Under the pieces are notes generated by a model that did no database searches, was not told the DNA's origin, and saw only the letters and a program-made list of their open reading frames with translations. The translations under genes and the position numbers were made by a program. From assembly GCA_002269645.1 (NCBI GenBank), contig NIVC01003848.1, forward strand, positions 1 to 42,314: a DNA stretch of 42,314 nucleotides, in the 5' to 3' direction. Shown piece after piece: positions 27,101-33,100 of this stretch (position 1 is the first letter of the stretch; every line of letters begins with the position of its first letter). This DNA is from Macrostomum lignano (taxonomy: Eukaryota).

Positions 27101-30100
27101 ATCACAGAAGACGGCCAATGAGATGCCGCTCTATCACCTAGAACAGTCATTTAAAGGTGACGTCGGATGTAGAAAAACTGGCTGACTAAGAAAACCAGCT
27201 GAGTTGTGAACAGCGTCACGAAAATTTTCTCTCCCAGACAAGATGCCAATAAAGTTTGACAACCGAGTTTCAGGTAATTGCAGGAAACTGATACATTGCT
27301 TAATGAACTATTCTTTCATTCCTGATCTGATCCAATCCGCCCTATTGTATTTTTGACTCCCTCAGATGTGCCGCGATCGAGTCTTCGCGTGGGAAGTTAT
27401 GACAACTCAATCACGGGCGCCGCCACTGGGACTGGTGACATCGGGACGGACGATTCCTCTGAGTCGCTGGACATCCGCCTGCGCACTGTGGAGGAACGCC
27501 TTGAAGCCGAGCAGCAAGATACTGAGATGATCGGCGTGTTTGAATTCTTGGCAACCGAGAATCGTCGCGGAATGATTTATTACTACCTGCGTCTGGCGCT
27601 AATCCTGCTGCTACCTGTGGCCCTGGCTGTCGGCTTCCTTAGCCAGCAGATGGCCGAGGTATCCGACAGCTTGACCGGTCAGCACGGTCTCATGGCAGCC
27701 TACAGTCGCTTGAGCGCTTCTACTGAGGCCTCGCTGGCCCTCGGCGCCGAGATGTGGGCAGGAGTTCGGCTCATCTTGGAGCCCTCGAGGCCTGCGTCGG
27801 CGGCCCGATTCCACCTGGCCGTTGCTCCATCGTCAGCTACTGAGAAGGTGCTTGACTGGCGCAGCCGGCTGGACAATATGACGAAAATGGGCGTCATTGA
27901 AGAGCCGCAGCAGCGGCAGCAGATGGTGGTGGCGCTAGTGTCTGACTACGCCGCATCAAGTAGGGCGGCCTATCATGCGTCCTCGATCGTCGGGCAGCCG
28001 GTCGTTCGAGACGAGCTGTGGCAGCTGCTGGCAGCCAGCTCCTACCTGACTCGGTACCTGCTATTCCAGCAACAGTTCTATGCGATCGGCTACGCAATTC
28101 TGCATGGCAACTGCCTGGCAGCCTGGGGCGAGCTGCATCGCCTAAATGGACAGGCGAACGCAGCGGCCCGAGGTGCCAGTCGCTACAGCCAACACTTAAA
28201 GTTATTTTTTGCCTCTCTGGAAGCGGCCGAGACCACGCCAACGGCTGCTCTGATGGCGATCACCCAGCGCCTTCTGCAGGAGGAGAGGGACGGCTCCGTC
28301 AGCGCTGACTGCAAAGCCGGCGGCAACGCAACTTCAGCTGCTCGAGCGGCCGATTTCGCCTACCTCGCCGATCTCTGGCTGGCCTCGGCGCGCGACCAGC
28401 TGAACAGTCTGGCAGCCCAGTTCAACTCGGCCGCTTCTAACGACGCGTCCCTCTCGGGCGTTGGCCTGGCGGGGATGAGCATCGGCCTCCCGCTGCTGCT
28501 GGCCGTCTGTGCAGGAATCGCCGTGTTTTACTCTCGGCAGCTGCGGCTCAGCCGGGAGGACCGGGTCGGCCTTGGGGAGCTCATCATCGACAAGCGGAAC
28601 GAAATGTTTGCGCAACAGGTATTGCTAATTGGAAACTGGTTTTAAAAAGACAAGTTTGCCCAACAACATAAATGTACTATAAAGTTGAATAAATCAGTTC
28701 CATTATTCAAGGATTAATATTCTTAACAGCAGGATCATCAAGATATTTTTCCGCTCGTCGAGCTACCGAAATTGAAGGGGGGGGGTTGCGCCGGACCCCG
28801 ACCGTTGGATATTCAACGATTCTGCCAGAAGGTCGGATTTTTTCCATAAGCGCCAGTGTATTCAGTACACTCCTGTGCGCCAATCAGCACTGCGCCTCAG
28901 TGCAGCCTTGCCAGGCCTCCAAATTTCATCAGCACATCGACAAATTGTACTTGCATCAACTCTGACGTTGTTGGTCACTGGCTTAAACCTAGGCGGAGCT
29001 TTTAGACCTTCAACAGGTCGCACAGGTGACTATGGACACCCTGATGCAAATTTCTCTATTATGGCTGATCAACCTCGACCGTGGGCAAAGTTCAACTGCG
29101 GGACATCCTCAGCTAGTCTCTCAAGCATTCCGTCATCACCCGGACGCCGTCGGCGCCTTCAACAGATGGATTCTAATGTTAAAAAAGTTGATCAGATGCT
29201 CGATATTTAGCCGCAGATTTTTCTTGCAAAAAACAACTTGTTTTGCGCTGACGTTTGAGCATCTGGAGGCTAAAATTTCTATTAATAAATTACCATATCA
29301 TTATTAAAAGCAAGACCGTAGTCTCTGTTAACCAGCAAATCAAAAGGAAAAAGTTGCATCCTGGTATGTATTTTGGCAGGCTTTAATGAAGCCTTTCCCA
29401 AAATCACCGCCTCTCTCTATAATCATTGTTTTCACCAATCCTATATTCTAAGCACTTGGAAGCTGGGCCAATGAAACGCGACATCTGGATGAATGAGGAA
29501 ACCCATGATCGGCTCATGAACCAAATTACAGAGCTTAGCGGTTGTTGATCATTCATAATCAGAGACACTATTAATGGATGGATTGGAGGGACTTGAAAGA
29601 TTTCCACACTGCCAATTACTGGAAATATATCACTAATCAGTGCTTGCCTTCCCAACAAGAGTTTCGCCATCTCTCGAATATTTCCCGAACTCCCGCAGAC
29701 CAGGGCTCTGGATCTCATCCACATGATGCTGCCAAAACAGGTAGCTCGCATTCTACGAGATGGCGGCAACCCGGAGCCTAAACAGTTCGATCACGCCACC
29801 GTATACTTCAGCTGCGTGTCCAACTTTAAGTACATTGTTAGTCGGAGTCGGCCCATAGAAATTATGGTGCTCTTGAACCACATCTACGGGTGAGCTGGCT
29901 GAAGCTACAGTAAATTGCTGTACATTTGTTCTGGAATAGTAAAAGTTCATGATGATAAAACACACCAAATGACTGTTGATAGTCGATGGTGATGATGGGA
30001 CACATCAAATGACTGTTGATAGTCGATGGTGATGATGGGACACATCAAATGACTGTTGATAGTCGATGGTGATGATGGGACATACCAAATGACTGTTGAT

Positions 30101-33100
30101 AGTCGATGGTGATGATGGGACATACCAAATGACTGTTGATAGTCGATGGTGATGATGGGACACACCAAATGACTGTTGATAGTCGATGGTGATGATTGGA
30201 CATACCAAATGACTGTTGATAGTCGATGGTGATGATTGGACATACCAAATGACTGTTGATAGTCGATGGTGATGATGGGACACATCAACGGACCGACGAT
30301 GAGTTCGATGTGTATTTACAGAGGATTAAAACTTGGTCAAAAGTTTATAAAGTGATGCTAATTTCAGAATTTTCGACGCAGAGATCGACAAGTACCAGGT
30401 GTACAAAGTGGAAACCATCGCCGACACGTACATGGTAGTCAGCGGAGTGCCAGTAGGAAACGGGCTACGTCACGTCACGGAAATCGCCAGAATGAGCCTG
30501 GATCTACTCGCTTCAGCCAAAGAGATTCACATCGAGCACCTACCCGAGGAGCAGGTGCTACTGAAGATTGGCATTCACACAGGTTTGTTGAATACTTTAA
30601 TTCAAGATATTTTAAGTCGGGACAGCCTAAAATAACATAGAGCGTATTCTTATGCTTGAAGCATACTCGTAGCAAGCAGGAAATGCAATGAGTTAAAAGA
30701 CACAGTCTAATTTGGTCAGTCAGCAAAATCAATAATCCCGGAATTTTTAATCCTTCCAACGAGGATCCTTCCAACAAGCAACATTCCAGAGTCGAAAATC
30801 TAATCCCAGAGCTCCTGGGAGAAAATCCTTGGCAGTTGTGAATCTTACAGCTTCACTGAATCCCTAGGATCCGTGGTCGCTGGCATCATGGGGCAGACTA
30901 ATCCGCGCTACTGCCTGTTTGGTGACACCGTCAACACCGCGTCGCGGATGTGCTCGCACGGAGCTGGTCAGTACGACTTTAGAGACTCGTATTATGGCTT
31001 TAGTGTCACTACAACTTTTTCTTGTCTTCCATTGTTGTTTCTCATTTTATTAAGCGGCAATTAGCAATCCAAGTAGTTATTTACCAACCCAGAGTGGTTG
31101 GTTATGTGTTATGTCAATAGCCCTCCAAGTTATTGCACTAGCACTCCAAGGTAGTCATTAATACCCTTCACGATAGTCACCAGCTTATCTCTCCTCCTCT
31201 CCTCTTCATAGTCTTGAACCACGGGCATCATGACTAGTATGACCCTGAGATTCCATTGCTGTTATACGAACCAGCCTGCTTTACCTGAAGCTTTTTAAAC
31301 CGTAAACAAAGTGCGTTTAAGTGCATATAAATTCTAACTAACAAATTTCTCAAGCTCAACCTACAGAGAACTTCACCGGTAATTCAATCTGTTGCTATGC
31401 CACGCATGTCACTCGTACAATTAATGTACTTTAAACAGGGGTACATGTGCGCGTATAAAGCACAGATCGAGCGTCCAAAGCGCATGATAAATTATCCAAC
31501 TAGTTTGTAGCTCTGCTCTAGAACCTCTAGGCAATCTATTTATCCGCTCGTGTATTATATATTAATCAACCATCCACTCCAGACCTGAAAATTCACGTCA
31601 GCGAAGAGACGGCCGATCTCCTCATAGCGGAGAAGTTCTATCTTAAATCGCGCGGGAAAGTGCCAATTAAGGTTAGCCAGTTCGAAAACCTGTCTTCTGA
31701 ATTTAGTGACCGTTTTAAATTACCAGCTACAACTTCCTTATCTCTGACCCGAATTTTAGGGCAAAGGCGAGCTAACCACCTACTGGCTGCTGAGCGAGCA
31801 TCTGCCCAAGAAGAAGGCCAACGTGCACATTATGGCCGACCCCGAAGTTATCCGGGACTGAGTTGATACGGACCAGTTATTTTTGTCCCTGATTGTCCGT
31901 TAACAAAAGCTATTTTTATTGAGACTATTTTTTGACGGAGAAAATGTACTTTCATGTTGTGCTTTTCTTAGATTGGGTTTTTAGCCTCTGGGTCCGACTA
32001 CATAGCACTAAAGTAGTAGCACTGTAATAGAACAGGGCCCTTAGCTTGTTTGTTAGTTCGTTCGCAAGGGTAGGGAGGAACTTTTTAAACTCTGCCGCAC
32101 ATCAACACGACATTTGACTTGCAGTTTGCTCACTTTGCTGAGTCTTATGCATGCACACACACGGATACGTACGCAAGCACGCTAACACGGATGTACAGTT
32201 TCCCTGACTTTCTCATTAGCACCTTATGGCTTGTGTCATACCACCCGCGCTTCCCATATAGGCGTGAATCGCAGGACGAACCCAGTGCACGAGTCCCAAA
32301 TTAATGCTCAGAAAATCTAACCCGCTAAACTAAGGTTTTGGGTTCGAAACTTTTTATGTGAAAAGCAGCTTCTTATTTGAAAAGTTATCTTCACAATTGT
32401 CTTACGAATTGGAAGTAGTTAAGGTTACCCCTGGATTAAAATAATCAATTTTGGCCTTCATCTGTTCTAGCATACAGGAACTCGAGCACAATAAGCAGTT
32501 CTTATGCTGTCGACAAAAGAGAGGTGCGGGAGCGCTCTTCACATTTTGAGGAGTTCCACCAAGCCCTCAGTGAATGAAAGAGAATTCGCTCACACACTCG
32601 ATCTAGAGAGAGGCTCTGCTCTGAGCTAATTTGCGAAATTCTACCCTGCCCGTGCGCTAAGGAGATTTTGGCCCAACCAGCTCTCTTCCCAAAGGATGCC
32701 GCCTTCCTTCGATGCCATTCCAGCTCAATCCTGATGAATTTCTCTCATTTTTCGTGCATAATTAAATTCCCTATTCTAAGCGCTCCGTTCCTCACCTACG
32801 AGCATTAACGTACCTTATATACTTTGGCTACTCTTTTTAATCTGGCATTCGTTTTATGAGTCTTTTTGTAAGCAAAAGCGTCCGATGTTAACCCTAACCT
32901 ACCGGGATAATAAATGCTGCATTAGAGAAATACAACTGAAGACTGGCTTCTGAGTTCAGTTGTTGCAACAAAGCAATGCAACACAATTGTTACGAAGTGT
33001 CTTTACATTTTATGCTTCTTTTAGCCAAAGGAAGCAGCCGCTGCAATCGCGGTGCATCCGAGAGCTGTATCCAGCCTACAACTCCCATTACGTATTCCCA

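Follow-up and report, generated by a model that had tools for sequence, protein, structure and literature searches.

A two-transmembrane guanylyl cyclase gene of the flatworm Macrostomum lignano with active-site residues resembling those of the soluble guanylyl cyclase beta chain

The window analysed here is a stretch of 42,314 nucleotides of Macrostomum lignano DNA (assembly GCA_002269645.1, the whole of contig NIVC01003848.1, positions 1 to 42,314), and its plus strand carries at 27243-31861 a gene for a membrane guanylyl cyclase (GC). The predicted enzyme has lost one part of its catalytic machinery and kept the other, in a pattern that matches the beta chain of soluble guanylyl cyclase (sGC). 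The splice model was rebuilt by hand from the raw sequence. It has seven exons, all six introns run from GT to AG, and the coding sequence (CDS) of 1980 nucleotides encodes 659 amino acids before a TGA, with neither a stop nor a frameshift within the seven exons. A first-pass annotation had predicted a spliced product of this length with two transmembrane (TM) helices, and the rebuilt model bears this out. The parts of the gene are as follows.

27243-27273, plus strand: putative exon 1 with the start codon and residues 1-10; the GT donor at 27274 and the AG acceptor at 27365 preserve the frame
27366-28618, plus strand: exon 2, encoding the cytoplasmic N-terminal tail, TM1, the ectodomain, TM2 and the start of the linker
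27587-27643, plus strand: TM1-coding segment, within exon 2
27644-28471, plus strand: segment coding for the 276-residue Ala-rich helical ectodomain, within exon 2
28472-28528, plus strand: TM2-coding segment, within exon 2
29699-29889, plus strand: exon 3, encoding the last part of the signalling helix and the first strand of the cyclase
29804-29830, plus strand: degenerate metal/phosphate loop YFSCVSNFK, exon 3
29813-29815, plus strand: TGC codon of Cys467, exon 3
29960-30288, no strand assigned: non-coding 40-bp minisatellite (8.2 copies, 96% matches), which makes up most of intron 3
30368-30582, plus strand: exon 4, with E507, D511 and K558
30411-30413, plus strand: codon of E507, exon 4
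30423-30425, plus strand: codon of the second metal Asp, D511, in ETIAD with G510A, exon 4
30564-30566, plus strand: codon of K558, which replaces the phosphate Arg, exon 4
30868-30966, plus strand: exon 5, with N575, C579, N586, R590 and C592
30900-30902, plus strand: codon of Asn575 in the beta-flap, exon 5
30912-30914, plus strand: codon of C579, exon 5
30933-30935, plus strand: codon of N586, exon 5
30945-30947, plus strand: codon of R590, exon 5
30951-30953, plus strand: codon of the unusual C592, exon 5
31583-31671, plus strand: exon 6, a C-terminal part of the cyclase domain
31760-31861, plus strand: exon 7, with the GKG motif, a short tail and the TGA stop
31763-31765, plus strand: codon of K628 in GKG, exon 7

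The first exon and its start codon are putative, and M65 (27527-27529) is an alternative in-frame start. The alignment with human GC-A (phmmer against the PDB, E 2.5e-64) runs the length of the catalytic domain, including the exon 3/4, 4/5, 5/6 and 6/7 junctions, with no gap. The exon 2/3 junction (QQ/TR), which had been named at first pass as the point where the model might fail, is spanned free of gaps when hhalign compares the protein with a profile of nine members of the NIT-domain GC family (NIT-GCs). The exons have a G+C content of 0.48-0.63 (0.39 in the putative exon 1) and a third-position value (GC3) of about 0.7, against 0.38-0.43 in the introns, and high GC3 relative to the introns is preserved in both halves of the gene. 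With its intact reading frame, canonical splice sites and coding G+C signature, the gene looks maintained. Each exon occurs once in the window by tblastn, which found no second cyclase gene and no duplicate or alternative exon 3 bearing the Asp.

A hydropathy scan places the TM helices at residues 85-103 and 380-398, separated by a loop of 276 residues that has sequons at N181 and N331 and cysteines at 260 and 326. Pfam recognises a single family in the protein, PF00211 (residues 456-637, E 3.9e-58), whose score of 196.5 bits against a curated cutoff of 21.9 places it among the class III guanylyl cyclases. No kinase-homology domain is found by Pfam, as the first-pass annotation had stated, nor does Pfam find an H-NOX, PAS or coiled-coil region N-terminal to the cyclase; that part of the chain consists of the TM, loop, TM arrangement instead. 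A single-sequence AlphaFold2 (AF2) model of the ectodomain is all-helical and of low confidence (mean pLDDT 53), and with this low-confidence model Foldseek returned generic helix bundles only (E>0.3).

The altered half of the active site is centred on Cys467 in YFSCVSNF, where phmmer pairs vyfsCvsnf with iyfsDivgf of human GC-A at the first metal-binding Asp (Asp 1). The 280 closest cyclase domains hold Asp at this position in 264 cases and Glu in eight, and none holds Cys. The canonical D-I-V-G-F-T loop has become C-V-S-N-F-K, including G470N and T472K, through at least seven nucleotide changes in its six codons, and the flanks of the loop are conserved. In addition, the phosphate Arg of RIGIHTG is replaced by Lys (R558K), and G510A adjoins the second metal Asp, D511. 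The intact half comprises the Glu-Cys pair that specifies GTP (E507 in KVET and C579 in RYCLFG), D511 in ETIAD, the ribose Asn and transition-state Arg (N586 and R590 in VNTASR) and the phosphate Lys (K628 in GKG); all of these motifs were quoted at first pass and all are present. An active homodimer requires two metal Asp residues in one chain, and the flatworm chain has Cys467 and D511.

We considered a sequencing error as the source of Cys467 and reject it. The first-pass annotation had argued that the TGC codon is two substitutions from GAC and thus beyond a single-base error, which agrees with the rebuilt CDS; the distance from GAT is three. Because an Asp codon would need at least two base changes and three neighbouring conserved positions also differ, an error is not a credible origin for the residue.

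In 64 columns, conservation among the 280 closest domains reaches 90% or more; the flatworm protein is intact at 55 of them and deviates at nine. Among conserved columns, the deviations include three of five alpha-type positions (hypergeometric P=0.017) and none of five beta-type positions. By these residue patterns the active site has been remodelled selectively, in one functional subset, which fits a chain with a beta role better than neutral decay. An alternative is an unexpressed or decaying paralogue left by duplication in a neopolyploid, repeat-rich genome, and several observations fit such an origin: M. lignano is a recent polyploid (PMC10733133), no annotated or transcript-derived protein in the databases searched matches the gene, no family is detected in the Ala-rich orphan ectodomain, and the gene sits among satellites and has a minisatellite in intron 3. 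We nevertheless think an unexpressed or decaying paralogue quite unlikely, as 1980 nucleotides in seven exons have escaped stops and frameshifts, every intron keeps GT and AG, GC3 stays near 0.7 against about 0.4 for the introns in both halves, and the deviations cluster in one functional subset, which points to selective remodelling.

A different alternative involves a second cysteine. E592C replaces the 96%-conserved Glu of SRME, a position at which Cys occurs in three of the 280 closest domains, so that with D467C two conserved acidic residues near the active site have been replaced by Cys. With D511 kept and position 558 still basic, the protein might be an active homodimer with an unconventional metal site formed by Cys467 and D511, perhaps with C592, that accepts a thiophilic metal or acts as a redox or S-nitrosylation switch. 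We consider this very unlikely. The phosphate-loop Gly and Thr are lost too, thiolates are poor ligands for hard ions such as Mg2+ and Mn2+, and about 400 relatives include no class III cyclase that uses Cys as a metal ligand. Furthermore, enzymes in which a metal Asp is mutated to Ala are dead, both in sGC (alphaD530A; PMC6005667) and in Rv1625c (PMC4821796).

The match to sGC beta1 (GUCY1B1) can be followed residue by residue. Table 1 of PMC6005667 gives eight key catalytic positions of sGC with the chain that supplies each: the alpha/C1 chain gives metal 1, metal 3 and phosphate 4, and the beta/C2 chain gives base 2, base 5, ribose 6, phosphate 7 and phosphate 8. The flatworm residues at these positions, C467, E507, D511, K558, C579, N586, R590 and K628, correspond to the beta row of that table. 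Human beta1 (PDB 4ni2_B) reads ILFSGIVGFN, VETVGDKYM, ITIGIHTG, GNTVNLTSR and KGK, and human alpha1 (PDB 4ni2_A) reads FSDIVGFT, MRIGLHSG and GNNVTLANK and has no KGKG. In beta1 (PDB 4ni2_B, 6jt0_B), as in the flatworm protein, Asp 1 is lost (Gly in beta1, Cys here), the phosphate-loop Thr is lost (Asn in beta1, Lys here), the C1-type phosphate Arg is lost or weakened (Thr in beta1, Lys here), and the second Asp, the Glu-Cys pair, Asn, Arg and Lys are retained. The first-pass annotation was correct in likening the protein to sGC beta1, which has Gly at Asp 1 and keeps the second Asp, and its reading of a half active site emerges stronger than claimed, with G470N, T472K and R558K added to the altered side and all five beta/C2 residues intact. 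Unlike sGC beta1, which is soluble and has H-NOX, PAS and coiled-coil regions, the flatworm protein spans the membrane twice and has a helical ectodomain, and its cyclase domain groups with beta1 in 22% of neighbour-joining (NJ) bootstrap replicates. We conclude that it is a convergent analogue of sGC beta1 and not a member of that family.

Experiments have established half-site complementation in enzymes of this class: the D300A and R376A mutants of Rv1625c are each dead and are active together (PMC4821796), alphaD530A kills sGC (PMC6005667), and Caenorhabditis elegans ODR-1 and DAF-11 are described as an obligate heterodimeric receptor GC in which each monomer gives essential residues to a single site (PMC5225109). 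We put at about an even chance the proposal that the flatworm gene encodes a beta-type membrane GC subunit, inactive or feeble as a homodimer, which completes one active site together with a partner that has both Asp residues. The altered residues C467, N470, K472 and K558 stand at metal Asp 1, in the G-F-T phosphate loop and at the phosphate Arg, the elements that a class III chain contributes in the C1/alpha role. Every element of the C2/beta role is intact, namely E507 and C579 (guanine), N586 (ribose), R590 (transition state) and K628 (phosphate), and the second Asp is kept as in sGC beta1. A homodimer would then have two crippled sites and would be nearly or wholly inactive. The partner would be a chain with both Asp residues, either a canonical or an alpha-like membrane GC, whose Asp pair would combine with the E/C/N/R/K set of the flatworm chain to make one competent GTP site. 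The other site of the dimer would be degenerate, perhaps with a regulatory role, as in sGC alpha/beta, adenylyl cyclase (AC) C1/C2 and ODR-1/DAF-11. The helical ectodomain may gate the dimer through a signalling helix of NIT-GC length.

ODR-1/DAF-11 resembles the proposed flatworm heterodimer in being a membrane GC, but its chains are type-1 receptors with a kinase-homology domain, unlike the two-TM flatworm protein. Mammalian AC C2 and the complementing Rv1625c mutants follow the same division of labour: the metal ligands come from one chain, and the residues for base, ribose and transition state come from the other. These enzymes differ in being ATP-specific and in their 6-TM or 12-TM anchors; the Rv1625c mutants, besides, are products of engineering and do not occur naturally.

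The same residue data would fit a non-catalytic pseudo-cyclase, either a dominant-negative or modulatory subunit that halves or silences canonical GC dimers, or a sensor or scaffold that binds GTP and takes no part in cGMP synthesis. Pairing with a fully canonical chain would leave a single site in place of two, residues of the dimer interface are altered, and the sole M. lignano relative among the database matches, P0364, is canonical rather than alpha-like. A purely inhibitory subunit, however, would need none of the five beta-type residues that are retained, including the transition-state Arg and the Glu-Cys pair, and other Spiralia have beta-like NIT-GCs side by side with alpha-like ones, the latter needing a partner. 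On balance we judge a pseudo-cyclase unlikely.

Several points weigh against the beta-type subunit. No partner was identified among the database matches, and the obligate heterodimer put forward at first pass stays a prediction; in its favour, M. lignano has at least one canonical true NIT-GC, P0364, that might act as the partner. The matches also include no transcript-derived or UniProt protein of the cyclase gene. In a phmmer search of 1.84 billion representatives together with a word-indexed search, yielding thousands of relatives, the best identity to the cyclase domain was 54%; neither an orthologue nor a homeologue was found, and Cys467 thus has no support from conservation or dN/dS. The search with the full-length protein returned bacterial HAMP-cyclases only, probably a result of Ala-rich words flooding the index. 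With R558K a conservative change and D511 still in place, a homodimer may keep some residual activity. Lastly, M575N, which lies in the beta-flap at the dimer interface, and V571M, another altered interface residue, could equally be the product of drift.

The protein was described at first pass as NIT-type, and this designation we could not sustain. NIT-GCs are a described animal family whose members carry a NIT domain between two TM helices and, beyond these, the cyclase (Moroz et al. 2020, PMC7400543); Platynereis NIT-GC1, whose cyclase domain is described as 'highly conserved', makes cyclic GMP in response to a nitric oxide donor when expressed alone and requires its NIT domain for this (Jokura et al., bioRxiv 10.1101/2023.08.02.551600). 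The layout of TM, helical loop of about 280 residues, TM, signalling helix and cyclase, with no kinase-homology domain, is common to them and the flatworm protein; the flatworm linker aligns with theirs without a gap, the 276-residue loop falls within their 10-90% range of 275-286, and the TM2-to-LP spacing is 42 residues against their 37-41. The flatworm protein differs from them in that the NIT signature is undetected, and it lacks metal Asp 1 where Platynereis NIT-GC1 has a conserved cyclase domain. Neither PF08376 nor any other Pfam family matches the ectodomain even at E<=10, a custom NIT profile of six sequences gives no match and one of 126 sequences gives -0.8 bits, and hhalign of the ectodomain against NIT, run locally and globally, gives a probability below 2%. 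In a global profile alignment controlled with shuffled, reversed and circularly permuted sequences, the ectodomain scores z=1.84 over shuffles, about equal to its own reverse, whereas the weakest true NIT-GC scores z=13.7 and the one from M. lignano itself (P0364, UniProt A0A1I8GKN0) z=42. We therefore reject NIT homology of the ectodomain as a detectable feature.

The cyclase domain gives no clearer allegiance. Its score with a hidden Markov model (HMM) of NIT-GCs minus that with an HMM of other receptor GCs is -17.8 bits, which lies between the held-out distributions, and its sister group in NJ trees is unstable (36% NIT, 64% non-NIT), the comparison sets being biased in both cases. The protein is NIT-GC-like in layout and, at the level of sequence, fails the test of the defining domain; topology and spacings are all that match. 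The ectodomain may be a NIT domain diverged past recognition or another helical sensor. The absence of nitric oxide synthase (NOS) has been reported for flatworms, M. lignano among them (PMC10728431), and, speculatively, loss of NOS could have relaxed constraint on a NIT-like sensor.

True NIT-GCs of other animals show a comparable division. From a nemertean match we collected by search a set of 120 and scored 121 domains; the first metal position is Asp in 109 and is replaced in 12, by Gly (six), Glu (three) or Ser (three) and never by Cys.

Asp 1 to Gly, beta-like NIT-GCs: Tubulanus P0153 (Tubulanus polymorphus, XP_074647587.1), P0273 and P0275; Lineus P0277; Mactra P0293; Ruditapes P0285
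Asp 1 to Ser, beta-like NIT-GCs: Mercenaria P0349 and P0353; Dreissena P0370
Asp 1 to Glu: Babylonia P0283 and P0287; Littorina P0294
Alpha-like NIT-GCs, from nemerteans and molluscs: P0302, P0303, P0318, P0319, P0330, P0334, P0335, P0366, P0308 and P0301

In the NIT-GCs that lack Asp 1 the loop Thr is usually gone and R558 is often replaced (by Gln, Leu or Lys), and N, R and KGKG are retained. The alpha-like proteins, a larger set, retain D, G, T, D and R and carry GETVS/TIASKMES (Asn to Ser or Thr, Arg to Lys) with no KGKG, which is the same change as in sGC alpha1. Both forms occur within the same species in Tubulanus, Mactra, Ruditapes and Mercenaria. Like the beta-like NIT-GCs, the flatworm protein is a two-TM membrane cyclase in which Asp 1 and the phosphate-loop Thr are replaced and N and R are retained (with KGKG in the NIT-GCs), and the nearest pattern to its own is that of Dreissena P0370, with S, D, N and K at the four alpha-type positions. 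Unlike it, the beta-like NIT-GCs have a clear Pfam NIT domain. Their orthology to the flatworm gene could not be demonstrated by NJ bootstrapping. As a sequence pattern, the occurrence in other Spiralia of beta-like NIT-GCs with complementary alpha-like paralogues in the same species would support a beta-type role for the flatworm chain, and the complementary forms suggest that the family may contain obligate heterodimers of the sGC kind.

Gene adjacency as evidence of pairing is mixed. On the Haliotis rufescens contig JALGQA010000105.1, the alpha-like P0301 (1-6133, minus strand) lies head-to-head with a gene at 10001-30272 (plus strand), about 3.9 kb away. The neighbour encodes a 710-residue NIT-GC that matches P0281 by length and contig, and P0281 retains eight of eight catalytic residues; the two genes may be regulated together. 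The beta-like P0275 of Tubulanus adjoins another beta-like paralogue, and P0153 has no GC neighbour.

The broadest form of this idea is that two-TM cyclases of the NIT-GC type are widely sGC-like alpha/beta obligate heterodimers in Spiralia, a second independent origin of the arrangement, with the flatworm gene an extreme beta-type member in which Asp has become Cys and the sensor has diverged beyond recognition in a phylum from which NOS is reportedly lost. We regard it as possible and somewhat doubtful. Asymmetric class III cyclase dimers (AC C1/C2, sGC alpha/beta) and half-site complementation are textbook knowledge, and the surprise is therefore limited. An alpha/beta split in a transmembrane cyclase, put forward at first pass, would not be a novelty in principle, given the precedent of ODR-1/DAF-11 (PMC5225109) and the beta-like and alpha-like NIT-GCs in public databases. 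What is new is the setting, a two-TM membrane GC that lacks a kinase-homology domain, together with a Cys in the metal position, absent from the roughly 400 relatives, and a hint that alpha-like and beta-like forms run through the NIT-GC-type cyclases. The two NIT-GC papers do not discuss heterodimeric cyclases, and in the literature searched no other paper connects NIT domains with heterodimeric GCs.

Membrane GCs, NIT-GCs among them, have so far been treated as homodimers, and the NIT-GC1 assay used one chain. If alpha-like and beta-like membrane subunits do pair, single-gene knockdowns and single-chain assays would misjudge which members are active, and the two ectodomains could set the sensory input combinatorially. 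The flatworm gene, with a natural Cys at the metal position and an orphan ectodomain in an animal reported to lack NOS, offers a clean and cheap test case.

The rest of the window is repeat-rich animal DNA with many satellites, in which Rfam finds no match. The other features are these.

1974-5086, plus strand: non-LTR retrotransposon (long interspersed nuclear element, LINE) with endonuclease (PF03372) and reverse transcriptase (PF00078) open reading frames (ORFs), flanked by short tandem arrays
15362-17449, minus strand: intron-less gene for a 695-residue TTLL12-like protein with SET-like and tubulin-tyrosine-ligase (TTL) domains
21577-24034: (ACTA)n microsatellite of 2.4 kb, upstream of the cyclase gene
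24582-24945: 21-bp tandem array, upstream of the cyclase gene
25468-26448: GA-rich tract of about 1 kb, upstream of the cyclase gene
34226-35018: 14-bp tandem repeat of 57 copies, which accounts for the long ORFs listed there
38228-38944, 40537-41064 and 41249-41773, all minus strand: exon-sized ORFs with Calx-beta and EPTP domains

The microsatellite, the 21-bp array and the GA-rich tract cause the extreme GC and AT skew upstream of the cyclase gene, and the long ORFs in that stretch are repeat artefacts. A weak GPS match at 5645-6562 overlaps a 50-bp tandem repeat and was set aside as probably spurious. The TTL-family gene is the sole gene called on the contig in the public protein collection, which holds no model for the cyclase gene. 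The Calx-beta and EPTP ORFs suggest part of a large adhesion receptor gene of the ADGRV1/VLGR1 type on the minus strand.

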